From positions 217,115 to 281,114 of IMG/VR virus record IMGVR_UViG_3300036770_008729: 64,000 nucleotides of DNA, one strand, 5' to 3'. This document shows positions 1-48,002 of this stretch, in pieces. The notes beneath the pieces were generated by a model that worked only from the letters and a program-made list of their open reading frames with translations, was not told the origin of the DNA and did not search any database. The position numbers and the translations under genes are program-made. Within the stretch, counting starts at the first letter, position 1, and the number at the start of each line of letters is the position of its first letter.

Positions 1-462
1 ATAAGGAAGTGCAAAATCATTATATCCTGATAATTTTCTAACTATTTTTTCAAAGTGCCAGATATAAAGACGGTGCCAAACTAAAAAGTGTAATTTTTCT
101 TTACCTGATGGAGTGTGAGTACAATTATCCCAACCATCCATTTTATCACCTACATTGTGATAAGCACCACACCATCGATTGTTTTTAATTGTATCAGGAA
201 CCCAGTGAATGGCACCTTGATAATACCAACTCAGGGGATCTTTACAATCTTTTTTTCTCATAATATCTAAAGCTTTGTTTAAGGCTAAAAGGTCGTTAAT
301 GGCTTCAGGTGAATTTGCATTTTTTCTTGTAAATCTTTGTTGTTCTGTTTGTTTCTCGTTATTACTACAAGAAAAAAGAAACATACTAAAAACGATTAAG
401 AAAAAGATAATAAGACCAATAAATAACTTTTTAAGGTCTTTGTAAGTAGTGAATCGATTCAT
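1..462 (-). CDS. Tyrosinase/polyphenol oxidase family protein with lipoprotein-like signal (3' end runs off window)
   Basis: Manual translation: MNRF...FLFSC SN...SWYYQGAIHW...DNCTH...HFLVWHRLYIWHFEKIVR...DFALPY; type-3 copper CuA signature. Absent from ORF track. Confidence 0.85.
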   Translation of the reverse strand, partial: MNRFTTYKDLKKLFIGLIIFFLIVFSMFLFSCSNNEKQTEQQRFTRKNANSPEAINDLLALNKALDIMRKKDCKDPLSWYYQGAIHWVPDTIKNNRWCGAYHNVGDKMDGWDNCTHTPSGKEKLHFLVWHRLYIWHFEKIVRKLSGYNDFALPY

Positions 463-2246: not shown

Positions 2247-3881
2247 ATGAAATATCTAAAACTATTTGAAGCTTTCGAATCGACTATATTAAGTAAAACT
2301 TTATCTTTCATCAAAGATGAAGAGTCTAAGAAACAATTCATGTTTGCACTAGACAAGATTTGTTCTACAATTGATTATCCTAAATCTGAGTTAAAAGATG
2401 AATACTTTCAATACTTATCATTTTACCCAGCACTTAAACTAAGTGCTAAAACAGGTGATGAACCTTGTGAAGCTTTATCACGTGATTCTTATCCAGACTA
2501 TGCAGTTGATGGGGCAAAGTGTAAAGGAGGTAAAGTATTAAGAAAGTGGGGAGCAAGAACAAGAGAAGTTGAATGTAGTATATGTAAAGGAACTGGTGTT
2601 AAACCAAAGAAACCTGAAATTAAGTTAGTTAAGTTTTGGTTTTCAACAGAAGGTAAATATATTGCTGTTACAGCAGTTGATGGCTTAATAAGAAACACAA
2701 CGACTTCATCAACCGCGAGAGGGTATTCTAAAGACTATCAAGATTATATAGTAGTTAACACCACTGAAGATTCTAGAGAACTACAAACTGGAATGATAGT
2801 TAGAGTTACTATTAATGGAAGACCTACTATTTGTTATATTGTTAAAGATAGAAATACTTATCCATATGCAATACAAGATGAACACAGTGGATCCACACCA
2901 GATAACATACCTTCTAGAAACTGGAGGAATTTTGGACATAGTTCTTGGCACTTATCAAGAGGTGAATACAGAGGAACAATTGAAATACTTGAACCAAAAA
3001 GTAAAGAAGAGGTTATTGTAGAACCAAATCCTTATACTTGGAATGCAACGCTTAGCTTATCTGGTTATTCAGGTATGAAAGTAGATATTTATTCTGATGT
3101 TCAAGAAAAAATTAAGGATGCAAACTTTGCTATTGTTTTAGATTTCGGTAAGATGAAACAATCAGAATTCAAAACTACTTATTCAACGAGAAGTGAAAGA
3201 GAAGAATCTAGAACTGGTGCATTAGCATTAGAGAAACCTGAAGATATAAAAGCAACTAACATTGAAAGATATATTAAAAGTTTATCTGATAAAGTTGCAA
3301 GTGGAGATGAATTAACAAAAGTAACAAGAGTTATTCCAAGATTAATGGGTGGAAGAAATATTTTGCTTTATATTGGTATGAATAGAAATCTTTCAACTAT
3401 TGATAGTTTAGCTACACGACTTTATAGATTTATTACAGAAGATGAGGACAATAAAGAATACAATGCAAGAGAAATAGTAGCAACAATAAAAAACTCATAC
3501 AAACAAAATCTACAATTTACTACTGATTTAAATGAAGTTTTAGATGAAGTAAGAAAACAATTACAAAAACCAGGAAAAGAAGCTTATTTATCAACATTTG
3601 ACAAAATGTTAGAGATATCACAAAAGATAAATGATAAAGTATTTTCAACAGAAGTTAAATCTATTGAAGATATTGAATACATCTATCAAAAATTGAGGAC
3701 AATTCAAAATATGTTACAATCCAGTCGTAATCCAGCAAATAGATTGAGATACTTTATGGAAAGATTAAGTTATCTAACTACTGATAGATGTGTATCTAGA
3801 ATTTTAGAAATTGACCAAGATGAAATACCAAGTATAATTGAAGGTCTAGAATCAATTGGAAGATTTGTTGAGAGAGTTTAA
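2247..3881 (+). CDS. Hypothetical protein with MKYLKLFE tag and CxxCxGxG motif
   Basis: 544 aa; CSICKGTG DnaJ-type zinc motif. Confidence 0.6.
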   Translation: MKYLKLFEAFESTILSKTLSFIKDEESKKQFMFALDKICSTIDYPKSELKDEYFQYLSFYPALKLSAKTGDEPCEALSRDSYPDYAVDGAKCKGGKVLRKWGARTREVECSICKGTGVKPKKPEIKLVKFWFSTEGKYIAVTAVDGLIRNTTTSSTARGYSKDYQDYIVVNTTEDSRELQTGMIVRVTINGRPTICYIVKDRNTYPYAIQDEHSGSTPDNIPSRNWRNFGHSSWHLSRGEYRGTIEILEPKSKEEVIVEPNPYTWNATLSLSGYSGMKVDIYSDVQEKIKDANFAIVLDFGKMKQSEFKTTYSTRSEREESRTGALALEKPEDIKATNIERYIKSLSDKVASGDELTKVTRVIPRLMGGRNILLYIGMNRNLSTIDSLATRLYRFITEDEDNKEYNAREIVATIKNSYKQNLQFTTDLNEVLDEVRKQLQKPGKEAYLSTFDKMLEISQKINDKVFSTEVKSIEDIEYIYQKLRTIQNMLQSSRNPANRLRYFMERLSYLTTDRCVSRILEIDQDEIPSIIEGLESIGRFVERV

Positions 3882-3882
3882 A

Positions 3883-4476
3883 TTATTTTTTAATACCCCA
3901 AAAATATAAATCACAATGGTTATACTCAATTTCAAACTCGTATGAGGAAAAAATATCATCTACTTTTATACATTCTCGTATATCATTTTCAGTAACATTT
4001 TTGTAATATTCAGAATCCCAATTTTCACGAAATACATTAGGCATAGTTACCCAACTAGTCGTTGTATTACCTTGAGATGTAATTTGTTTTTCCCTATCTA
4101 TAGCGTCTTGTGTTTTTGTACCATGTACTGGTCTACCTGTTGTAGCACAAGTAAAAATAAAATAACCACCAGATTTTAACATTCTTACGGCATTTTGAAT
4201 ACTTTCCTTATAAAACGGATTATGTTCCCAACATTCACAAGATATTATAGTATCAAAAGTTTCGTTTGGTGCATCATATTCATTTGCCGGACATACAACA
4301 TCAACACCTTTACCTGGACCTATATCCAATCCGATAAAATCACAGTTATCAAACCACGGCTTTTCATTACCATTAACGTCAAAAGAACCTATGTCTAAAA
4401 CTTTTCTATTTTTAAAAGCATCTGGAAATTTATTTTTTAGTTTATTCAAATATTCTTTTTGTTCTTTATGTGCCAT
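3883..4476 (-). CDS. Class I SAM-dependent methyltransferase
   Basis: VLDIGS motif I, FDTIISCECWEH, LKSGG. Confidence 0.85.
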   Translation of the reverse strand: MAHKEQKEYLNKLKNKFPDAFKNRKVLDIGSFDVNGNEKPWFDNCDFIGLDIGPGKGVDVVCPANEYDAPNETFDTIISCECWEHNPFYKESIQNAVRMLKSGGYFIFTCATTGRPVHGTKTQDAIDREKQITSQGNTTTSWVTMPNVFRENWDSEYYKNVTENDIRECIKVDDIFSSYEFEIEYNHCDLYFWGIKK

Positions 4477-25181: not shown

Positions 25182-26492
25182 TTATTGTTCATCTGATAGA
25201 GAGTAGTTGATTTCATCCAGAATTGAATCGGTTGGGAATTTTTCTCCTCTTTTATTATAAAAGAAACCATCTCTAAATTTTACCAATTCGGAATCATCAT
25301 TCATATTATCAGGTAATACACAATCATTCCATAATTCGATAATTTGATTAGGTGTAGTAGTTTTGCCAATTTCCACTCTTAATACTTCGAGTTCTTCTGG
25401 AATTTCAATTTGGGGTTCTTGCTCTGATTTAGCTCCTTGTTCTGCTTTTATACGAGCTTCTATTTCTTTGGCATGATCTTCTAAGTTCTTTGCTGAGGCA
25501 TCTGCCTTTCTAATAGGATTGCCTTTTTCGTCCTTAATTAGATTGCCGTCTTTATCTAAAAGAAAGTCTTCTTCATATTCTGGTAGCAACCCTAACTTTT
25601 TACGTTGTTCTAAATCTTTTTTATCTCTTTCTCTAATACCAGCAGCGGCTCTTTTATAAGTCTCTGGATTTAATTCTTCATTAACGAATGATTCAAATAA
25701 TTTTAGGTATTTCATATTATTTTTACTTTCAGCAACTGATTTTTCAGACTCATCAATTACTCTTTTAAGTTCAGCTGTATTATCAACACTAACAACTTCA
25801 TCAAATCCTTCTTTTGATAAAACATCTTTTATTTTTTCTTCATCAAAAGGAATGCCTTTATCATCTTGTAAGTCATATGATGTAAACATTCTATCAAATG
25901 CAGCAGGTGGTATAGTTTTAGATTTACCTTTAGCTTTCATTTCTTCTGATCTTTTAGCTGCCATTTTTTTGATAATTTCTTCAGCTCCTTTGAAGTTAAA
26001 AACAACTGCTACTTTATGATATTCGCCTTCAACACCTTCAATAACTTTAAGTGCTCCTTTTCTTGAACCAGAGTTCATATTGGTCATATCGACTACAATA
26101 TTTTCTTTTCCTTTACCTTCGGCAATTCTTTTGTTAAATATATCTTGAATTTTACCGTTAGCTTCTAAAACTCTATCATAAGAAAGTGGTGCCCAAGTCA
26201 TATAAGCTGGTGATTTAATAACGGTGCCATATTTTTCATTTTTATCACCTTCTTTTTCAACATCTTTAATGGGTAATGAGAAAAGGTCATCATATGTCCA
26301 ACCATACTCTGCATACTCTTCAGCAACTTTTTCGACAATATCATCTCTATTTATTACAAATGGTTGTATTTCACCAAATTTGGTTTTTATCCAAGTTGAT
26401 TTACCTACAGATGGAGGTCCAATAAGAACATATATTGTTTTATCTTTAACTTCTTCACCTTCAAATACTCTGAAATTTTTAATATTCCTCAT
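25182..26492 (-). CDS. P-loop kinase (AAA_33/PNK-like) fused in frame to a second tagged module
   Basis: GPPSVGKS, INRDD, VVDMTN; internal MKYLKLFES at 25715. Confidence 0.8.
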   Translation of the reverse strand: MRNIKNFRVFEGEEVKDKTIYVLIGPPSVGKSTWIKTKFGEIQPFVINRDDIVEKVAEEYAEYGWTYDDLFSLPIKDVEKEGDKNEKYGTVIKSPAYMTWAPLSYDRVLEANGKIQDIFNKRIAEGKGKENIVVDMTNMNSGSRKGALKVIEGVEGEYHKVAVVFNFKGAEEIIKKMAAKRSEEMKAKGKSKTIPPAAFDRMFTSYDLQDDKGIPFDEEKIKDVLSKEGFDEVVSVDNTAELKRVIDESEKSVAESKNNMKYLKLFESFVNEELNPETYKRAAAGIRERDKKDLEQRKKLGLLPEYEEDFLLDKDGNLIKDEKGNPIRKADASAKNLEDHAKEIEARIKAEQGAKSEQEPQIEIPEELEVLRVEIGKTTTPNQIIELWNDCVLPDNMNDDSELVKFRDGFFYNKRGEKFPTDSILDEINYSLSDEQ

Positions 26493-28539: not shown

Positions 28540-28560
28540 ATATATTCAAAGAACTATTTG

Positions 28561-28636
28561 TCGTTAGGGTAGGACTCGAACCTACAATCTTTCGGGATTT
28601 TCACCCGAACGCTCTATCAAATTGAGCCACCTAACT
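28561..28636 (-). tRNA. Atypical tRNA (Phe-like, enlarged anticodon arm)
   Basis: Cloverleaf; TTCGGG-TGAAAAT-CCCGAA arm; A1:G72 mismatch; D loop lacks GG. Confidence 0.55.
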
Positions 28637-28725: not shown

Positions 28726-29526
28726 TTAAATTGGTAGATTTACTTTGGATAATATTTGGTTCGAAACATGAGTGTAAATTTCAGTAGTTTTTACATTTGA
28801 GTGACCTAATATTTTCTGAATTACTCTTAAATCAGTACCATTTTCCAATAGATTTGTTGCACAACTATGTCTCAATTGGTGAATGTGATATTTTTCACCC
28901 AAATATTTTTTAACAATTTGATTACAGCTACCAGAACTATATTGTAAACTATTTTGACCATTGAAAAGGTATTCTTTTGGTCTATATTCTTTAAAATATT
29001 CTCTAAGTAATTCTAATATTTTCTGGGATAGGGGTAAGACTCTATCTTTTCTACCTTTAGCATTTTTAATATGAATAATCATTCTTTTGGAATCGATATC
29101 TTCAATTTTAAGGTTAATTACTTCCGATACTCTTAATCCGACTGAATAAGTTAAAGATAATATCGTTTTATGTTTAAGATTAGTAATTTTAGATAATTGT
29201 TCTTTAATGTAATCACCATCAATAACCTGTGGTAACTTCTTCTCAGATTTGGGTCTTTTGAAACTAACCTTATCATATTTCTTATTAAGTCCGAATTTGT
29301 AGAGGAAACGGATTGCGTTAATAACCTGATTTTGTTGTGAAACAGAAGTAAAACTATAAGTATCTAAATATGATTGAAAATCATTAGATGTGAGTCTAGT
29401 TGGTGAAATTTTTATTGTAGCTAAAAATTGATTAATATAATGGAGATAGGATTTTATTGTCCTATCTGAGTAATTTAAATACTTCAATTTTTGATTACAA
29501 ATTTCGTAATAATCTGTTTTTTTCAT
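28726..29526 (-). CDS. Tyrosine recombinase (IntI/XerD-like, SAM-like N-terminus)
   Basis: GLRVSE, KGRKDR, HQLRH, LGH, IYTH. Confidence 0.95.
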   Translation of the reverse strand: MKKTDYYEICNQKLKYLNYSDRTIKSYLHYINQFLATIKISPTRLTSNDFQSYLDTYSFTSVSQQNQVINAIRFLYKFGLNKKYDKVSFKRPKSEKKLPQVIDGDYIKEQLSKITNLKHKTILSLTYSVGLRVSEVINLKIEDIDSKRMIIHIKNAKGRKDRVLPLSQKILELLREYFKEYRPKEYLFNGQNSLQYSSGSCNQIVKKYLGEKYHIHQLRHSCATNLLENGTDLRVIQKILGHSNVKTTEIYTHVSNQILSKVNLPI

Positions 29527-42472: not shown

Positions 42473-43315
42473 ATGATTAGGTCTACTCTTGGAATAATAA
42501 AAGCAGCATCATCTGTATTAGTCGAATATTTTATAGTTGGTGGAGGTGGTAGTTCCGGTGGTAATGGAGGCGGCGGAGGTGGTGCTGGTGGAGTATTAAT
42601 AGGCAGTGAAACATTATTATCAGGAACTGTTTTAACCATATCTGTTGGAAGTGGAGGAACTCCTTATTCTAATGGAGGTCCTTCTAGTATTATAGGTACC
42701 GGACTTTCTAAAACATCTAGCGGCGGTGGTAGAGGTGGAACAAGAGATGGTTCACCCGGTCTTACAGGGGGAAGTGGAGGTGGAGGTTGTGCATCACAAT
42801 CTCCTCCTGCTGGTCCAGCTGGATTCGCCGGTGTATCTGGTCAAGGTAACTCAGGTGGTAGTGGAACTTCATATGCACTATCCACACAAGCTGCTGGTGG
42901 TGGAGGAGGTGGAAAAGGGTCAGTTGGAACCAATGGTTCGGCAACCCAAGGTGGTAATGGAGGAAATGGTTATTTATTAGTTTGGAATAACACAGGATAT
43001 GCTGGTGGTGGTGCTGGATCGGGTCTAAACTATAGTGGTTTTGGTGGAAAAGCTGGAACTGTACAAGCTGGATATGGTGGGGGTGGTCCTCAGAATGGAA
43101 CAAATGTAGGTAGAGTTAATAGCGGAGGTGGTGGGGGAAGTATCGCTAATGGTTTAGGTGGTGGTGATACTGGAGGAGGATTTGCTGGAGGTTCTGGTGT
43201 AGTTATAATTAGATTAAACACATTAGCTTCATCGACTACTGGTCTTCCTACTATATCAGCGAGTGGTTCTTATACTATATATACTTTCACAGGAGGAGGA
43301 ACAATAACAATATAA
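42473..43315 (+). CDS. Glycine-rich putative virion/fibre protein
   Basis: Paralog of 9585-10433. Confidence 0.7.
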   Translation: MIRSTLGIIKAASSVLVEYFIVGGGGSSGGNGGGGGGAGGVLIGSETLLSGTVLTISVGSGGTPYSNGGPSSIIGTGLSKTSSGGGRGGTRDGSPGLTGGSGGGGCASQSPPAGPAGFAGVSGQGNSGGSGTSYALSTQAAGGGGGGKGSVGTNGSATQGGNGGNGYLLVWNNTGYAGGGAGSGLNYSGFGGKAGTVQAGYGGGGPQNGTNVGRVNSGGGGGSIANGLGGGDTGGGFAGGSGVVIIRLNTLASSTTGLPTISASGSYTIYTFTGGGTITI

Positions 43316-43319
43316 TAAT

Positions 43320-43676
43320 ATGGCTCATTTTGCAAGAATAAATAATAATAATGAAGTAATAGAAGTTGTTGTAATAAATAACGGGGTTTTATTAGATGAT
43401 AATGGATTAGAATCCGAAGTTAAAGGCATTGAGTTCTGTAAAACTCTATATGGGTTAGATAGTAATTGGATACAAACTTCATATAATTCAAAATTCCGTG
43501 GAGTTTTTGCAGGTATAGGTTTTACCTATAATGTAGAGAAAGATGTTTTTACACCACCAAAGCCATTTGAATCTTGGTCATTAAGTAGTGATGGGTTTAC
43601 CTGGTTATCACCAGTTCCTTATCCAAGTGATGGTGGTTTTTATATTTGGAGTGAACAAAACTTAAATTGGATTTAA
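43320..43676 (+). CDS. MAHFA-type partner of Gly-rich protein
   Basis: Paralog of 9216-9569. Confidence 0.7.
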   Translation: MAHFARINNNNEVIEVVVINNGVLLDDNGLESEVKGIEFCKTLYGLDSNWIQTSYNSKFRGVFAGIGFTYNVEKDVFTPPKPFESWSLSSDGFTWLSPVPYPSDGGFYIWSEQNLNWI

Positions 43677-43681
43677 AATTG

Positions 43682-43754
43682 TCGGGAAGACAGGACTTGA
43701 ACCTGCGGCCTCCTGGTCCCAAACCAGGCGATCTACCAACTGATCTACTTCCCG
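43682..43754 (-). tRNA. tRNA-Pro(TGG)
   Basis: CCTGG-TTTGGGA-CCAGG. Confidence 0.9.
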
Positions 43755-43759
43755 AAAAT

Positions 43760-43834
43760 TGGCGGTCTATGACGGTTACGATCCGTCTACTTCTGCGTGA
43801 CAGGCAGATATGATAGCCACTTCACCAATAGACC
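43760..43834 (-). tRNA. tRNA-Asp(GTC)
   Basis: TCTGC-CTGTCAC-GCAGA; encoded CCA; T loop ATCGTAA. Confidence 0.9.
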
Positions 43835-43838
43835 TTAG

Positions 43839-43909
43839 TTGTCAGAGATGGAATCGAACCACCATTTTGTGAGCCAAAATCACATGTCCTCCCTTTAGAC
43901 GACCTGACA
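43839..43909 (-). tRNA. tRNA-Gln(TTG)
   Basis: TGTGA-TTTTGGC-TCACA. Confidence 0.85.
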
Positions 43910-43913
43910 GTAT

Positions 43914-43954
43914 AAAAACAAAAAACCCAGTTAATCTGAGACTAACTGGGTTTT
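43914..43954 (-). terminator. Attenuator terminator 1
   Basis: CCCAGTTAGT-CTCAG-ATTAACTGGG-TTTTTTGTTTT directly before tRNA-Gln. Confidence 0.85.
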
Positions 43955-43974
43955 ACAATGTTTATATTAATATC

Positions 43975-44067
43975 TTAAATTGTAAATACATAGTTAGTCC
44001 TTACGGCACGATCTTGGTCTTGCGGTTGAGGTTGATTAACTGGAGTATTTACAATCATATTTTTCAT
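43975..44067 (-). CDS. Leader peptide 1 (Gln/Pro/Asp sensor)
   Basis: MKNMIVNTPVNQPQPQDQDRAVRTNYVFTI*; antiterminator GACTAACT 43992-43999. Confidence 0.85.
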   Translation of the reverse strand: MKNMIVNTPVNQPQPQDQDRAVRTNYVFTI

Positions 44068-44247
44068 TATAGTATATATTAGAATATTTTCTTTTGTTTA
44101 GACAAATATAGAAAAAGTTTTAAATAAATTGAAATTTTTTTTAAAAAAGACAAAACAAAGAAAAAATAATTGATATATAGTGTATATATTGAAACCCAAT
44201 AAAAGAGGAATATATAAACGGGGTTCTTCTGAAATTCAATATTTATT

Positions 44248-44278
44248 TTTGAAAATTAAAAATTAGTAATTATATTTG
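44248..44278 (+). promoter_or_regulatory. Bacteroidota sigma-70-type promoter
   Basis: TTTG-N19-TATATTTG. Confidence 0.75.
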
Positions 44279-44282
44279 TAAA

Positions 44283-44363
44283 ATGAAAACAACATTAAAC
44301 ATAGCGTGTTATTATGAGGGCGGGAATCCAATTCCGGTCAGACTAACAATTGCAATGTTTTAA
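44283..44363 (+). CDS. Leader peptide 2 (Ile/Ala/Tyr/Glu/Gly sensor)
   Basis: MKTTLNIACYYEGGNPIPVRLTIAMF*; antiterminator GTCAGACT 44337-44344. Confidence 0.85.
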   Translation: MKTTLNIACYYEGGNPIPVRLTIAMF

Positions 44364-44385
44364 GTGTTTCATAAAACAAAACAAT

Positions 44386-44422
44386 AACCCAGTCTGATTA
44401 ATTAGATTGGGTTTTTTGTTTT
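44386..44422 (+). terminator. Attenuator terminator 2
   Basis: AACCCAGTCTGAT...ATTAGATTGGGTT-TTTTGTTTT. Confidence 0.85.
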
Positions 44423-44432
44423 AAACACATTT

Positions 44433-44526
44433 GGGAGGCTTCGCCACAAAGAGTCTGTAAAACTCTTCTTCGTTAACAAAATGGTGGCTGGTCTGGAGTT
44501 TAGAGGTTCGATTCTTCGGTCTCCCA
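44433..44526 (+). tRNA. tRNA-Tyr(GTA), non-canonical (no local D arm)
   Basis: AGAGT-CTGTAAA-ACTCT; acceptor GGGAGGC/GTCTCCC. Confidence 0.7.
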
Positions 44527-44534
44527 CAAAATAT

Positions 44535-44608
44535 AGGTGAGTAGCTTAGATGGTAAAAGCATGTGTCTTATACACACAAGATAGTGGGATCGTTACCCAC
44601 CTCACCTA
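44535..44608 (+). tRNA. tRNA-Ile(TAT)
   Basis: TGTGT-CTTATAC-ACACA; T loop ATCGTTA. Confidence 0.85.
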
Positions 44609-44615
44609 CAGAAAA

Positions 44616-44687
44616 GCGAGTATCGTATAATGGTCATTACTCCAGTCTTCCAAACTGGAGATGTCAGTTCGATTCTGACTACTCGCT
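44616..44687 (+). tRNA. tRNA-Gly(TCC)
   Basis: CCAGT-CTTCCAA-ACTGG. Confidence 0.9.
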
Positions 44688-44694
44688 CTAATTT

Positions 44695-44770
44695 GGGGTT
44701 ACATGTTCCAAGGCTTTGGCGAGACTGCTTTGCAAGCAATCTGTGGTGGGTTCGATTCCCACTAGCTCCA
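44695..44770 (+). tRNA. tRNA-Ala(TGC)
   Basis: G3:U70 pair; loop TTTGCAA; weak D arm. Confidence 0.8.
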
Positions 44771-44883
44771 CAAAAAAAATTGAAAAAAGATTTGGTAGAA
44801 TAAAAAACTCTTCTTATCTTTGTAATCAATTAAAACGAAGGTTGGTAATCTACTGTAAAACTCTGGTTTCCTTCTTAAATAAT

Positions 44884-44955
44884 GGTCCGTTCGTCTAGGG
44901 GTCAGGACGACACCCTTTCACGGTGTAGACACGAGTTCGATTCTCGTACGGACTA
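44884..44955 (+). tRNA. tRNA-Glu(TTC)
   Basis: ACACC-CTTTCAC-GGTGT; extra promoter TTTG-N20-TATCTTTG at 44791-44822. Confidence 0.9.
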
Positions 44956-44957
44956 CA

Positions 44958-45108
44958 GCTCATCAGAGTAATTAACTGATGAAGGAGGAACCGTCTTCGA
45001 AGCGGTAAAATGATTAGAGTGTAGGCTGCACACTGGCTCTTGAGTCTTAGACGCGGGTTTAAGATATCGGAGCCGGAGGTTAAAGGATCGTGTCCTTTTT
45101 AATCAGCA
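44958..45108 (+). ncRNA. Unidentified structured RNA (~150 nt)
   Basis: Helices CATCAG/CTGATG, ACCG/CGGT, TGATTA/TAATCA, GGCTC/GAGCC, TCTTAGAC/GTTTAAGA, AAAGGA/TCCTTT. Confidence 0.55.
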
Positions 45109-45162
45109 AATAAAAAATAAAGAGAGAAAAACTTCTTAATATATAGTAATATAATTAATACA

Positions 45163-45267
45163 ATGAAAAATATGAATCTAAATATCAATTTAATGCTCAC
45201 GGTGGTGAATACGTTATGTATTAGACCTACTGAGGGTGAATTTCTATTTAGAGAATTAAGTATGTAA
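45163..45267 (+). CDS. Leader peptide 3 (Asn/Met/Leu/Ile/Thr/Val/Cys/Arg sensor)
   Basis: MKNMNLNINLMLTVVNTLCIRPTEGEFLFRELSM*. Confidence 0.85.
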   Translation: MKNMNLNINLMLTVVNTLCIRPTEGEFLFRELSM

Positions 45268-45292
45268 AATATTTAACTTTAATAAAGTGATT

Positions 45293-45330
45293 AACCCTTA
45301 GATAGAAAAAATCTAAGGGTTTTTTGTTTT
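45293..45330 (+). terminator. Attenuator terminator 3
   Basis: AACCCTTAGAT-AGAAAAA-ATCTAAGGGTT-TTTTGTTTT. Confidence 0.85.
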
Positions 45331-45335
45331 ATACT

Positions 45336-45407
45336 GGAGTAGTAGCTTAATGGGGAAGCAATCGGCTGTTAACCGATAGATTATAGGTTCGAGTCCTATC
45401 TACTCCG
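45336..45407 (+). tRNA. tRNA-Asn(GTT)
   Basis: ATCGG-CTGTTAA-CCGAT. Confidence 0.9.
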
Positions 45408-45413
45408 CAACAC

Positions 45414-45487
45414 TGATGTGTAGCTCAAATGGTCAGAGCGCGAACCTGATAAGTTCGAGGTAGTGGGATCGTTACCCACCACATCAA
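45414..45487 (+). tRNA. tRNA-Ile(GAT)
   Basis: CGAAC-CTGATAA-GTTCG; T loop ATCGTTA. Confidence 0.9.
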
Positions 45488-45496
45488 CAAATAAAT

Positions 45497-45575
45497 GCCC
45501 CAATAACCGAGGTTGCCTTCTAAGCAACTAATCGTAACGGAGTGGAAGATATAGGTTCGAATCCTATTTGGGGTA
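45497..45575 (+). tRNA. tRNA-Arg(TCT), non-canonical (no local D arm)
   Basis: GTTGC-CTTCTAA-GCAAC; acceptor GCCCCAA/TTGGGGT. Confidence 0.7.
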
Positions 45576-45580
45576 CAAAT

Positions 45581-45661
45581 GCCGAGATGGCGGAACGGTA
45601 GACGCGCTAGTCTTAGGAACTAGTGTCTAAAGGCGTGAGGGTTCGATTCCCTCTCTCGGTA
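45581..45661 (+). tRNA. tRNA-Leu(TAG)
   Basis: CTAGT-CTTAGGA-ACTAG; variable arm. Confidence 0.9.
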
Positions 45662-45668
45662 CAAAAAT

Positions 45669-45741
45669 AGTTCTGTAGCTCAGAGGAACGAGCAACTCGC
45701 TTACATCGAGAAGGTCACTGGTTCGATCCCAGTCAGAACTA
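45669..45741 (+). tRNA. tRNA-Val(TAC)
   Basis: CTCG-CTTACAT-CGAG. Confidence 0.9.
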
Positions 45742-45748
45742 CAAATAT

Positions 45749-45821
45749 GACACTGTGTCTGAATGGCTTAGGTCCCGGTCTGCAAAATCGTGGTATGTCG
45801 GTTCGAATCCGACCAGTGTCT
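45749..45821 (+). tRNA. tRNA-Cys(GCA)
   Basis: Loop CTGCAAA; U73. Confidence 0.85.
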
Positions 45822-45828
45822 CAGATAA

Positions 45829-45900
45829 GCTTCTTAAGCATTAATGGTGATGCGCTAGTCTTGTAAACTAGAGAAATCGGATCGTTACCGGTAAGAAGCT
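45829..45900 (+). tRNA. tRNA-Thr(TGT)
   Basis: CTAGT-CTTGTAA-ACTAG; T loop ATCGTTA. Confidence 0.9.
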
Positions 45901-45906
45901 CAAAAT

Positions 45907-45978
45907 AGTTCTGTAGCTTAATGGTAGAGCACTTCCTTGACATGGAAGAGGTAGTCGGATCGTTACCGACCAGAACTA
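45907..45978 (+). tRNA. tRNA-Val(GAC)
   Basis: CTTCC-TTGACAT-GGAAG; T loop ATCGTTA. Confidence 0.9.
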
Positions 45979-45985
45979 CAAAAAT

Positions 45986-46076
45986 GCTCCAGTGGCGAAA
46001 CCTGGTTGAAACGCATAGGACTTAAAATCCTATACCCTTGAGGTAAACATTGTCGGTTCGAATCCGACCTGGAGTA
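45986..46076 (+). tRNA. tRNA-Leu(TAA)
   Basis: TAGGA-CTTAAAA-TCCTA; variable arm. Confidence 0.9.
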
Positions 46077-46082
46077 CAAAAT

Positions 46083-46152
46083 GCCGCGGCTTAGTGGAAA
46101 AGAACCTAATCTCATAAGTTGGGTTAAATGAGTTCGACCCTCATACGCGGTA
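46083..46152 (+). tRNA. tRNA-Met/Ile2(CAT), compact
   Basis: CTAAT-CTCATAA-GTTGG; short D arm. Confidence 0.7.
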
Positions 46153-46249
46153 CAAAAAATAAATTAAAAATATTTGGTAAATTCAAAACTTCTTCCTTTA
46201 TTTGTGTAAAATAAGAAAACAGAGAAAAACTTTTTAATATATAGAAATT

Positions 46250-46345
46250 ATGACAACAATTCGCTCACATAAACATTTTAGTAAATCGAGTAAGTGGTTT
46301 AATACCCGCAGGTTCGGTACTAATAGCGTATTGTTTAAATTTTAA
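46250..46345 (+). CDS. Leader peptide 4 (Arg/Ser/His/Lys/Phe/Trp sensor)
   Basis: MTTIRSHKHFSKSSKWFNTRRFGTNSVLFKF*; antiterminator GGTTCGG 46311-46317. Confidence 0.85.
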   Translation: MTTIRSHKHFSKSSKWFNTRRFGTNSVLFKF

Positions 46346-46371
46346 TTTAATTATAATAACAATATTCAATT

Positions 46372-46406
46372 AACCCGAACCGTAAAAAGTTCGGGTTTTT
46401 TGTTTT
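46372..46406 (+). terminator. Attenuator terminator 4
   Basis: AACCCGAAC-CGTAAAAA-GTTCGGGTT-TTTTGTTTT. Confidence 0.85.
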
Positions 46407-46417
46407 AAACATATTTT

Positions 46418-46490
46418 GGAATCTAAGCTAATCAGGTGAAAGCACTGGACTGAAAATCCAGAGAGTCCGGATCGTTACCGGAAGATTCCA
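46418..46490 (+). tRNA. tRNA-Phe(GAA)
   Basis: CTGGA-CTGAAAA-TCCAG; T loop ATCGTTA. Confidence 0.9.
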
Positions 46491-46495
46491 CAAAT

Positions 46496-46569
46496 GGTGA
46501 ATGTAGCTCAATTGGTAGAGCGCTTGATTGTGGTTCAAGAGGTAGCGGGATCGTAACCCGTCATTTACC
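46496..46569 (+). tRNA. tRNA-His(GTG)
   Basis: G-1/C73; CTTGA-TTGTGGT-TCAAG; T loop ATCGTAA. Confidence 0.9.
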
Positions 46570-46578
46570 CAAATATAC

Positions 46579-46649
46579 ACACGATACAGACAAGGTGTCG
46601 GTCAGGTCTCCAAAACCTCGATGGGTGAGTTCGATTCTTACATCGTGTG
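46579..46649 (+). tRNA. tRNA-Trp(CCA)
   Basis: AGGT-CTCCAAA-ACCT. Confidence 0.8.
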
Positions 46650-46668
46650 CAAAAAAAAGAATAAGAAA

Positions 46669-46686
46669 ATGAAACGAAAACGTTAA
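46669..46686 (+). CDS. Mini leader MKRKR* followed by hairpin 46686-46715
   Basis: ATG AAA CGA AAA CGT TAA after A-rich tract; precedes tRNA-Lys(TTT) and tRNA-Arg(ACG). Confidence 0.55.
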   Translation: MKRKR

Positions 46687-46727
46687 GTGATGACTAAAGC
46701 TATTAGGTCATCACTCATAAAAAATAT

Positions 46728-46800
46728 GACTTCGTAGCTTAGTAGGTAGAGCACCTGGCTTTTAACCAGGGGGTCGCGAGTTCGAATCTCGCCGGAGTCA
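46728..46800 (+). tRNA. tRNA-Lys(TTT)
   Basis: CCTGG-CTTTTAA-CCAGG. Confidence 0.9.
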
Positions 46801-46812
46801 CAAAAATATAAT

Positions 46813-46947
46813 GGGGATGTAGCTCAGTGGTAGAGTTTTAAAATATCTCTTTTGAGGTTTTACCTCTTGAAAAGGAGTGTTGATTAAAAGAGTTACTTCG
46901 TTTGAATTGAAATCAAAAGGTCGTGGGTTCGAATCCCACCATCCCCG
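46813..46947 (+). tRNA. tRNA (TGA anticodon) with ~60-nt hairpin inserted between D and anticodon arms
   Basis: GGGGATG/CATCCCC, G73; TTTGA-ATTGAAA-TCAAA. Confidence 0.65.
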
Positions 46948-46952
46948 CAAAT

Positions 46953-47025
46953 AGTCTTATCGTCTAATTGGAAAGACGTCTGAATACGAATCAGGAGATT
47001 GAGGGTTCGAGTCCTTCTAAGACTA
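46953..47025 (+). tRNA. tRNA-Arg(ACG)
   Basis: TCTGA-ATACGAA-TCAGG. Confidence 0.85.
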
Positions 47026-47029
47026 CAAT

Positions 47030-47113
47030 GGAGAGCGTCCGGATGGTCGAGGATGGCGTCTTGAAAACGTTCTGGGTGTAATAGCTTCTGGGGTTCGAAT
47101 CCCTAGCTCTCCG
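47030..47113 (+). tRNA. tRNA-Ser(TGA)
   Basis: Loop CTTGAAA; long variable region; G73. Confidence 0.85.
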
Positions 47114-47118
47114 CAAAA

Positions 47119-47204
47119 GGAAAATAAACTAATCAGGGTATTAGTCACGATTGGAAATCGTTGAGTTCGTTAATTTGGATGTGGTTCGAGTCCACTGTTT
47201 TCCG
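47119..47204 (+). tRNA. tRNA-Ser(GGA)
   Basis: ACGA-TTGGAAA-TCGT; G73. Confidence 0.8.
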
Positions 47205-47208
47205 CTAA

Positions 47209-47295
47209 GGAAGATTGACCGAGAGGTAAGGTACCAGTTTGCTAAACTGAGGTTAGGTCTTAAAGCCTAGACAGGATCGTTACCTGTATCTTCCG
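47209..47295 (+). tRNA. tRNA-Ser(GCT)
   Basis: CAGT-TTGCTAA-ACTG; T loop ATCGTTA. Confidence 0.85.
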
Positions 47296-47371
47296 CATTT
47301 TGATACAATCTATTTTTTTATAATAATTATAATATTATATATACATAACTAAAATAACTTTAGTTTAAATT

Positions 47372-47917
47372 ATGAAATACTTAAAATTATTTGAAGACTT
47401 AGAAGAAGACAACTCAAAATATCTTATCGAATTATCATCTGCTAATAGCAGAGGTATTATGGATATGACTAATCCATCAGAATCAATTAAAAAAGGTGCT
47501 GAAGAATGGTGGTCACTTAATGTTGATGCTATCGTTAAATTAGAAATGTATAATAGATACAAGAATTTATCAAATGATATTTTAACAAAACTAATTGGAT
47601 GTAGAAGTGATGTTTATAAATTTGGTCCAAGTTATCTAAGAGCTATTGGTGATTTATCTGAACAAGATATAAAAAGATTTAGATTTACCGGAACTTCTGA
47701 TAAAAACTGTGAAGATACTTATAAGATACTATCCAGAGTTGTAAAGAAGTTCAAGAGAATGAAATTAGACCAGAAAATTTCTTTTTTTGGTGAATTAGAA
47801 AGTGATGAGTTTTTAATTGTAAGAAATTCATATATCTATAAAGTAGTAGATGGGAAGAATCTAATGAATGAAGTCATGGGTATATCAAACAAATTAGATA
47901 TTATATCTCAGGAATAA
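47372..47917 (+). CDS. N-terminal-tag family protein
   Basis: MKYLKLFED. Confidence 0.6.
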   Translation: MKYLKLFEDLEEDNSKYLIELSSANSRGIMDMTNPSESIKKGAEEWWSLNVDAIVKLEMYNRYKNLSNDILTKLIGCRSDVYKFGPSYLRAIGDLSEQDIKRFRFTGTSDKNCEDTYKILSRVVKKFKRMKLDQKISFFGELESDEFLIVRNSYIYKVVDGKNLMNEVMGISNKLDIISQE

Positions 47918-48002
47918 GTATGAAGCATTCAAGAGATAGAGAATATGTTATTGAATTATGGAGTAGGTGTGGAAAATATATGGGCGGTTCTACAATAGGT
48001 TA

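Follow-up and report, generated by a model that had tools for sequence, protein, structure and literature searches.

A conserved lysine/arginine-rich mini-ORF and hairpin preceding a phage tRNA-Lys gene: a candidate ribosome-operated switch of tRNA folding

The 64,000-nucleotide stretch of DNA analysed here (the window) comprises positions 217,115 to 281,114 of the IMG/VR virus record IMGVR_UViG_3300036770_008729, that is, the last 64 kb of a 281-kb record from a large uncultured phage. It is AT-rich and its proteins are mostly unassignable; Pfam and PHROGs scans returned little beyond a glycosyltransferase, structural proteins, an integrase and an AAA_33 kinase-like protein. A block of more than 25 tRNA genes occupies 43.6-47.3 kb. 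The Bacteroidetes-type promoter motif TTTG-N17-22-TAnnTTTG is enriched in the window, with 15 exact matches against 4.7 expected and 0 of 100 shuffles reaching 15. DNA sequencing runs that contain the sequence are subsurface and freshwater metagenomes, and a Bacteroidota-like host that does not use Shine-Dalgarno sequences is inferred. Within operon 4 of the tRNA block, a five-codon reading frame ends on a stable hairpin shortly before a tRNA-Lys gene (Table 1).

Table 1. Features of operon 4 around the mini-ORF, with leader B for comparison (window coordinates)
Position	Strand	Feature	Basis
45163-45267		Leader B, ORF preceding the operon-B tRNAs	22 of 33 codons read by operon-B tRNAs (P = 5e-5)
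46174-46210	+	Promoter-like stretch of operon 4, near the TTTG ... TAnnTTTG consensus	Read from the sequence; a near match, not an exact one
46250-46345	+	Leader C, main leader ORF of the operon (31 aa), MTTIRSHKHFSKSSKWFNTRRFGTNSVLFKF*	19 of 30 codons read by the operon's own tRNAs (7.5 expected, P = 1e-5); conserved in about 20 related loci
46311-46317		GGTTCGG, candidate anti-terminator partner	Reading of the sequence
46372-46407	+	Intrinsic terminator of the main leader, GC hairpin plus T-run	Terminator scan; conserved with the leader
46578-46650	+	tRNA-Trp(CCA)-like gene, upstream border of the element	Rfam match; cloverleaf fold with an 8-bp acceptor stem; missed by ARAGORN here but called at the same position in related loci L003 and L029
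46651-46668	+	A-rich, unstructured tract, presumed ribosome landing site, no Shine-Dalgarno sequence	Sequence and folding; A-rich tract present in all 21 related elements
46669-46686	+	Mini-ORF MKRKR*: ATG 46669-71, AAA 46672-74, CGA 46675-77, AAA 46678-80, CGT 46681-83, TAA 46684-86	Sequence; 19 distinct homologous ORFs
46686-46694 / 46707-46715	+	Perfect 9-bp core of the hairpin, AGTGATGAC / GTCATCACT	Sequence; extended to 12 pairs by RNAfold
46686-46698	+	Region 1, 5' arm of the hairpin, starting at the last base of the stop codon	Folding; would be covered by a ribosome at the end of the ORF
46703-46715	+	Region 2, 3' arm of the hairpin; AGGTCAT (46705-46711) can alternatively pair with region 3	Folding and duplex calculations
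46716-46727	+	A-rich spacer CATAAAAAATAT, 5' leader of the tRNA-Lys precursor	Sequence; terminator scan
46726-46732	+	Region 3, ATGACTT, last two leader bases plus bases 1-5 of tRNA-Lys, spanning the RNase P cleavage site (46727/46728)	Duplex with region 2, -6.4 kcal/mol
46728-46801	+	tRNA-Lys(UUU), proposed to be gated; its 3' acceptor strand is region 4	ARAGORN; Rfam (74.6 bits)
46813-46950		138-nt tRNA-like gene between Lys and Arg
46953-47026	+	tRNA-Arg(ACG), reading CGA and CGT of the mini-ORF	ARAGORN; linked in cis in this window only

The original prediction, a mini-leader MKRKR placed behind an A-rich tract, abutting a 9-bp hairpin without a U-tract and lying ahead of tRNA-Lys(TTT) and tRNA-Arg(ACG), is borne out as an observation. 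Two corrections are needed: the element directly follows the tRNA-Trp(CCA)-like gene, and a further tRNA-like gene separates Lys from Arg. The stop codon overlaps the stem by one base, and the spacer folds at -15 kcal/mol (z = -6.3; 0 of 200 shuffles as stable). A scan for intrinsic terminators, requiring a stem directly followed by at least 5 U in 8 nt, does not list the site on either strand, although it lists the genuine terminators of this region, which end in TTTTTTGTTTTA. A terminator on the minus strand is rejected as well, since the tail TTAACGTTTTCG is interrupted and no gene converges on it. Nor does a U-tract follow the alternative pairing of region 2 with the tRNA, which would have made a hidden terminator. 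An Hfq-type (ARN)n site was ruled out by reading the sequence, because the triplets are not ARN in any frame. In the window alone the configuration is about what chance gives: an ATG ORF whose stop touches a perfect hairpin of 9 bp or more occurs twice, against 0.7 expected in shuffles. The single instance is therefore not significant by itself, and its weight comes from relatives.

No close relative was found among GenBank phages, where only tRNA-level matches were returned, but two uncultured phage records of 635-642 kb share the Phe-His-Trp tRNAs. Both have the same arrangement after their Trp tRNA: L002 (L numbers denote individual related loci) has MKTKRKYKR*, a hairpin and three tRNA-Lys genes, and L003 has MKTKLKYKR*, a hairpin and four tRNA-Lys genes. 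A search anchored on the core of the Trp tRNA, a key independent of the ORF, returned 3 IMG/VR and 21 metagenome loci, and a tRNA-Lys anchor added two more. Of 25 related huge-phage loci, 21 carry the element, with the order A-rich tract, ATG, Lys/Arg-rich ORF, stop touching a hairpin, A-rich spacer of 7-17 nt and tRNA-Lys. In L004-L006 and L016 an HNH-like gene has been inserted between the Trp tRNA and the mini-ORF, and the mini-ORF stays with tRNA-Lys. Four loci (L020, L026, L028 and L030) have a different order of tRNA-Lys genes and lack the element. Other searches gave little. The neighbouring 181-aa protein had no relatives in IMG/VR, and the exact 3' half of the Trp tRNA had no hits. 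In a genome collection the leader pattern returned nothing, whereas the Trp anchor returned one phage-like contig binned with a Dehalococcoidales MAG, which has a different gene order and no element and is not usable as host evidence.

Is the mini-ORF a genuine reading frame? The 19 distinct sequences have 5-17 codons, of which 44% are Lys and 15% Arg. All start with ATG behind an A-rich tract and end in TAA, TAG or TGA, with the endings ...K-R-K-[Y/C]-K-[R/Q]-stop or K-R-K-R-stop. Counting back from the stop, codons -2 and -4 are AAA in 18 of 19, while codon -1 is Arg in 16 of 19 and is written CGA (10), CGC (3), CGT (2) or AGA (1), a synonymous variation that includes a change at the first codon position. 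AAA and AAG exchange, and the ORF of the window differs from its nearest relatives (METKRKR*) by an in-frame 6-nt deletion. In L031 the usual TAG has become CAA and the preceding CGA has become TGA, which keeps a stop next to the hairpin. The contact between stop and stem is the fixed quantity, with an overlap of 1 nt in most loci, whereas ORF length and hairpin-to-tRNA distance both float. This pattern is what selection on the position of a terminating ribosome would produce, and not what an RNA motif or a relic would show. As a negative control, the ORF-tail motif was used as a search key in IMG/VR: 80 of 84 matches were chance hits inside unrelated AT-rich sequence, none of them next to a tRNA, with a mean folding energy after the stop of -3.8 kcal/mol against -15.2 for the true elements.

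The hairpin is conserved as a structure and not as a sequence. Thirteen representatives fall into nine stem families with no resemblance to each other (AGTGATGAC, ACTGCTC, GGTTAGTAAC, GTAATAGTTCCA, GGCAACGGTTC, TGCCAATTC, GGCAAATGTTCC, GGGTTGGTGAGTGA and the ACTGCTCTTAAC variant), each with a dG of -10 to -19 kcal/mol and z of -4.6 to -8.4. The tail is A-rich in all nine families. Among 145 tRNAs with long upstream gaps in the loci examined, all 18 distinct ORF-stop-hairpin elements precede tRNA-Lys, with no convincing example before another tRNA.

In almost every family the 3' arm of the hairpin is complementary to the last leader bases plus the 5' acceptor strand of the tRNA-Lys that follows. 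In the window AGGTCAT matches ATGACTT; in L006 GGAATTAT matches ATGATTCC; in L015, L024 and L029 GATCGTT matches AACGATC; in L019 GCTACGAG matches CTCGTAGC; and in L002 ATGGGCA matches TGTCCGT. The first tRNA-Lys differs between lineages, starting with GACTTCG, GTGTCCG, GCGTTCG, GATTCCG, GATCTCG, GATCTGG, CCTCTCG or CCGTCCG, and the arm follows it. Where three families share the start GATTCCG (L006, L010 and L017), the leader bases differ so as to fit each arm. Cognate duplexes average -9.2 kcal/mol against -5.1 for non-cognate pairs. With one representative per family, 0 of 7429 derangements reach the observed sum (-82.5 against -47.9, sd 6.9), and the same holds when the weakest representative per family is used. 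Two controls, the 5' arm against the tRNA start and the 3' arm against interior tRNA segments, are at background. The fit is not uniform, however: the duplex of the window is the weakest of its family (shuffle P = 0.06), and that of L014 is also weak.

Folding of the precursor from the hairpin to the tRNA end gives hairpin plus cloverleaf in all 13 representatives. When the 5' arm is masked, the 3' arm pairs with the tRNA start in 11 of 13 (L013 and L021 do not switch) and the acceptor stem is lost. The mean probability that tRNA nt 1-7 pair with the arm is then 0.63, against 0.15 in chimeras carrying the hairpin of another family and 0.09 with shuffled arms, while that of the acceptor stem is 0.18, against 0.73 and 0.75. 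In the window, P(2:3) is 0.43 when the arm alone is masked and 0.82-0.83 with a ribosome footprint at the end of the ORF. When a footprint was placed at successive codons, P(acceptor stem) was 0.81 with no ribosome, 0.83-0.84 with the A-site at codon -4 and 0.12-0.18 at codon -1 or the stop; the corresponding values for the window are 0.99, 0.99 and 0.00-0.01. Codon -2 is borderline. With a 3' footprint edge of 12 nt instead of 9 nt, a stall at this last Lys codon already flips the switch, and only stalls at codon -4 or earlier would read as shortage, which in the five-codon ORF of the window leaves only codons 2-3.

The surrounding operons are organized along similar lines. Each tRNA group in the window is preceded by a 26-34-codon ORF and a strong terminator. 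Leaders C and B are both enriched in codons read by the tRNAs of their own operon (Phe, His, Trp, Lys, Arg and Ser for leader C), with no cross-enrichment between operons, and leader A is only weakly enriched (P = 0.07); some of the anticodons in this count were assigned by reading genes that ARAGORN missed. Leader C has the consensus ..I[RN].HKHFSKS..WF.. and is always followed by a terminator. Codon sensing by leader ORFs therefore appears to be the regulatory style of these operons, with the mini-ORF, all four of whose Lys and Arg codons are read by tRNAs of the same operon, as a second, Lys-specific layer inside one of them.

The best reading is a ribosome-operated RNA switch of the leader-peptide type whose output is the folding, and hence the 5' processing, of the next tRNA, rather than transcription termination. 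In this view, with no ribosome, or with one stalled at an early AAA or CGN codon because charged tRNA-Lys or tRNA-Arg is short, regions 1 and 2 pair, region 3 is free, 3:4 closes the cloverleaf and RNase P can mature tRNA-Lys. When decoding is easy, ribosomes would run to the last codons and the stop and melt region 1, and region 2 would pair with region 3 across the RNase P site, leaving a misfolded, unprocessed precursor that is probably degraded. The result would be negative feedback, or emergency induction, specific to Lys decoding and superimposed on the main leader-terminator attenuator. The analysis itself establishes the anatomy, its conservation, the codon-level constraint, the co-variation of region 2 with region 3 and, in silico, the thermodynamic bistability; translation of the ORF, the regulatory effect and its direction, the block to RNase P and the loss of misfolded precursor are inferred. 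The RNase P step rests on a synthetic riboswitch in which sequestration of a tRNA 5' leader controls cleavage in E. coli (PMC7897497), and the loss of precursor on the tRNA quality control of E. coli. Of 24 sequencing runs that contain the sequence or relatives of it, almost all are DNA, and the three RNA runs, examined together with one DNA run, gave only scattered tRNA-like pieces from other organisms. The calculations are equilibrium folds and not kinetics. Once the ribosome leaves, the more stable 1:2 hairpin should re-form, so that an irreversible step, such as nuclease attack or repeated ribosome passage, has to be assumed. Only the first of the 3-5 tRNA-Lys genes in relatives is touched by the pairing. 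A probability of roughly 0.5 seems appropriate for the specific switch, while it is rather more likely that this is a functional, translated cis-element coupled to tRNA-Lys.

The interpretation offered in the original prediction is thus partly supported. Conservation in related genomes, which had been set as a test beforehand, is clear, the setting in an operon with a leader peptide and terminator is real, and the inference that the output is not an intrinsic terminator holds, with the data now pointing to tRNA-Lys folding and 5' processing. The link to tRNA-Arg is a feature of this window, since in relatives the element always precedes tRNA-Lys arrays and Arg often lies in a separate unit. 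The suggestion of a second checkpoint related to PrrC and PARIS, for which tRNA-Lys is a target, is plausible but speculative, without direct evidence here. A broader and, at present, unlikely reading would be that huge phages of freshwater and subsurface Bacteroidota-like hosts control their tRNA supply by ribosome-sensed codon checkpoints at two levels: leader peptides that list the operon's own amino acids and drive terminators, and this mini-ORF, which would make maturation of the first phage tRNA-Lys conditional on ribosomes stalling at AAA codons. The element would then be an inducible counter-defence, releasing phage tRNA-Lys when a host anticodon nuclease (PrrC-, RloC- or PARIS-like) or late-infection tRNA decay depletes tRNA-Lys.

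Alternatively, the hairpin may be a processing or stability element, an RNase site or a block to 3' exonucleases separating the Phe-His-Trp part of the precursor from the Lys part, with the mini-ORF incidental or only keeping the spacer unstructured. Stable hairpins between genes in polycistronic precursors commonly serve this purpose, and conservation of structure without sequence would fit. However, this doubtful alternative predicts no conserved ATG, reading frame, Lys/Arg codons or synonymous substitutions, no fixed stop-to-stem contact and no co-variation with the 5' end of the tRNA, and other tRNA junctions in the same operons are 3-7 nt long and have no hairpin. Slightly less likely is transcriptional control without a U-tract, in which the hairpin is a pause or Rho-type termination signal melted by a ribosome reaching the stop codon, so that efficient translation would license transcription of the Lys, Arg and Ser tRNAs. 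The contact between stop and hairpin is the geometry of ribosome-dependent melting, and the operon already uses a leader and terminator upstream. Against it, the tail is never U-rich, the C-poor spacer is a poor Rho loading site, the logic would be positive feedback (shortage of tRNA-Lys would yield less tRNA-Lys), and the co-variation is left unexplained. It is improbable that the product of the minigene is what matters, either as a tiny basic peptide or through shedding of peptidyl-tRNA-Lys/Arg in the manner of bar. ORFs of 3-8 codons cause peptidyl-tRNA drop-off and tRNA sequestration (PMC2490762), and the C-terminal K-R-K-Y-K-R sequence is conserved, and the ORF of the window, with 5 codons, falls within the minigene size range of 2-8 codons, but length varies up to 17 in relatives, the N-terminal half is not conserved, neither the contact of the hairpin with the stop nor its match to the tRNA is explained, and a phage that adds tRNA-Lys genes has no obvious reason to sequester tRNA-Lys. 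An equally improbable relic, a decayed leader-terminator module (the ATGAAAAC(T/A) start resembles those of the full leaders, and some lineages lack the element) or a decayed tRNA copy, would not keep the frame, the stop position, a stable stem through nine complete sequence turnovers and complementarity to whichever tRNA-Lys follows, and a tRNA copy is further rejected because the pairing includes leader bases (-5 to -1) and positions 8-12, not just the 7-nt acceptor strand.

tRNA genes are usually treated as constitutively matured once transcribed, and the roles of phage tRNA arrays are still debated (codon supply versus evasion of tRNA-cleaving defences). A natural cis-element that reads decoding capacity with a ribosome, and answers by allowing or preventing the acceptor stem of a tRNA, would provide leader-peptide control with a new output, RNA folding and RNase P access instead of termination or RBS exposure. 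It would be the first natural counterpart of a principle so far shown only with a synthetic riboswitch, and it would show that phages regulate specifically tRNA-Lys, the tRNA most often targeted by anticodon nucleases. The element also offers a compact, portable design of about 60 nt for codon-specific sensors and, together with the conserved leader peptides nearby, points to an unrecognised regulatory layer in huge-phage tRNA operons. Literature searches found no natural case of a leader ORF controlling tRNA genes or tRNA folding, which in an incomplete library counts as absence of evidence only.

Among known systems, T-box riboswitches are, as is proposed for this element, cis-acting RNAs that report the state of one specific tRNA and feed back on the translation apparatus. 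They bind uncharged tRNA directly through a specifier loop and a T-box bulge, and control a terminator or an RBS of synthetase or transporter genes; nothing in the T-box family matched here, and an Rfam E-value scan of 43000-48000 found only tRNA-type matches in this stretch. Minigenes (lambda bar; 3-8 codon ORFs) and the tpr ORF of the E. coli tyrT tRNA operon are also very short ORFs. That of tpr is small, basic and co-transcribed with tRNA genes, and minigenes interact with the tRNA pool (PMC2490762). They have no stop-abutting hairpin and no complementarity to a neighbouring tRNA, and their effects are toxicity or unknown, not cis control. In translational attenuation (ermC, ermB and cat leader peptides) a ribosome on a leader ORF remodels a downstream hairpin after transcription, without any effect on transcription, as is proposed here. 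There, a stall that depends on a drug and the nascent peptide frees the ribosome-binding site of a protein gene, whereas here the downstream gene is a tRNA, no ORF follows, and the proposed signal is codon decoding.

Ribosome-mediated transcription attenuation (trpL, hisL, pheL, thrL and leuL; pheM of pheST) likewise uses a short ORF rich in the codons being sensed, on which ribosome position selects between mutually exclusive pairings (1:2, 2:3 and 3:4) and a stall signals shortage and turns expression up. In the present element these pairings compete in folding calculations, but there is no terminator and no U-tract. Pairing 3:4 is the acceptor stem of a tRNA, so that the proposed output is RNA folding and processing, and the regulated product would be the tRNA itself, not a biosynthetic enzyme or synthetase. 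The ORF can be as short as 5 codons and sits inside the operon rather than at its head. The output resembles that of the synthetic RNase P riboswitch, in which maturation of a tRNA is controlled by sequestering or exposing the 5' leader of the precursor in an alternative hairpin (Ender et al., 2021, PMC7897497). The predicted 2:3 duplex spans the -1/+1 cleavage site in the window and in most families. That device is engineered and ligand-driven through a theophylline-type aptamer, whereas this element is natural and appears to be driven by the ribosome, and its predicted pairing invades the acceptor strand as well as the leader.

In addition to the genes called by ARAGORN, the tRNA block contains five tRNA-like genes missed by that program, with plausible folds (Trp(CCA), a CAT-anticodon tRNA that could be Met or Ile2, Ala(UGC)-like, a long Tyr(GUA)-like and Arg(UCU)-like), although only two of them have Rfam matches. 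A further tRNA-like gene of 138 nt has acceptor, D and T arms and an anticodon-like loop, AUUGAAA, with an extra arm of about 55 nt placed between the D arm and the anticodon arm. Rfam gives a weak tmRNA match for this gene (21.6 bits), but there is no G3:U70 pair. The gene is conserved in three of the related loci (L020, L028, and L030). Finally, a stretch of about 140 nt after tRNA-Glu contains several hairpins without any tRNA or Rfam call, and it may be another small RNA.

Relatives (L002, L003, L004-L006, and L011-L031) carry 3-5 tRNA-Lys genes in a row, with UUU two or three times, plus CUU. Several of these genes are 84-91 nt long and have a long extra arm, which is unusual for tRNA-Lys and could reflect pressure from nucleases that target this tRNA. 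In one relative (L018), the first tRNA-Lys after the mini-ORF and hairpin element has a shortened anticodon loop (GGCTTAACC) and is called a "tRNA-Stop" by ARAGORN. It is probably a damaged copy, yet the mini-ORF and hairpin are intact. HNH-type or other small ORFs are inserted between tRNA genes in L004-L006 and also in L017, L021, L025, and L026; in L004-L006 the insertion lies exactly between the Trp tRNA and the mini-ORF. Homing-endonuclease traffic may drive the shuffling of tRNA genes.

Two features lie outside the tRNA block. A tyrosine-integrase-like gene (PHROG 1, E = 4e-47) is located next to a tRNA that ARAGORN calls Phe with anticodon AAA, and the record is labeled a provirus in IMG/VR. 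This may be an integration module or an element within the phage. In addition, a 436-aa protein has an AAA_33 domain and weak similarity to polynucleotide kinase. It could be part of an RNA-repair function, which would be relevant to tRNA cleavage defences.

Positions of the additional features in the window and in related loci
Sequence	Position	Strand	Feature
window	25182-26492	-	AAA_33-domain protein
window	28560-28636	-	tRNA called Phe
window	28726-29526	-	tyrosine-integrase-like gene
window	44171-44181		recurrent motif
window	44283-44363		leader ORF
window	44386-44423		terminator
window	about 44432-44526		long Tyr(GUA)-like tRNA
window	about 44695-44771		Ala(UGC)-like tRNA
window	44957-45100		stretch with several hairpins
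window	45137-45147		recurrent motif
window	45163-45267		leader ORF (leader B)
window	45293-45331		terminator
window	45497-45575		Arg(UCU)-like tRNA
window	about 46082-46153		CAT-anticodon tRNA
window	46233-46243		recurrent motif
window	46250-46345		leader ORF (leader C)
window	46311-46317		GGTTCGG, possible anti-terminator segment
window	46372-46407		terminator
window	46375-46381		5' arm of the terminator
window	46578-46650		Trp(CCA) tRNA-like gene
window	46813-46950		138-nt tRNA-like gene
L002	2983-3252		example of tRNA-Lys genes in a row
L004	about 3770-4310	-	inserted ORF
L006	about 3470-4010		inserted ORF
L018	about 341-412		first tRNA-Lys after the element

Each tRNA group is headed by an ORF of 26-34 codons and a strong terminator. 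Shortly upstream of the leader ORFs, and of their homologues in L003 and L020, the motif T(A/G)ATATATAG recurs; it may be a phage-specific promoter or start-site element, distinct from the TTTG ... TAnnTTTG motif. Leaders B and C are strongly enriched in codons read by the tRNAs of their own operon (P = 5e-5 and 1e-5, respectively), with no cross-enrichment, and leader C is conserved in about 20 related loci. Within leader C, GGTTCGG could pair with the 5' arm of the terminator that follows, acting as an anti-terminator. The arrangement looks like leader-peptide attenuation, in this case of tRNA operons.
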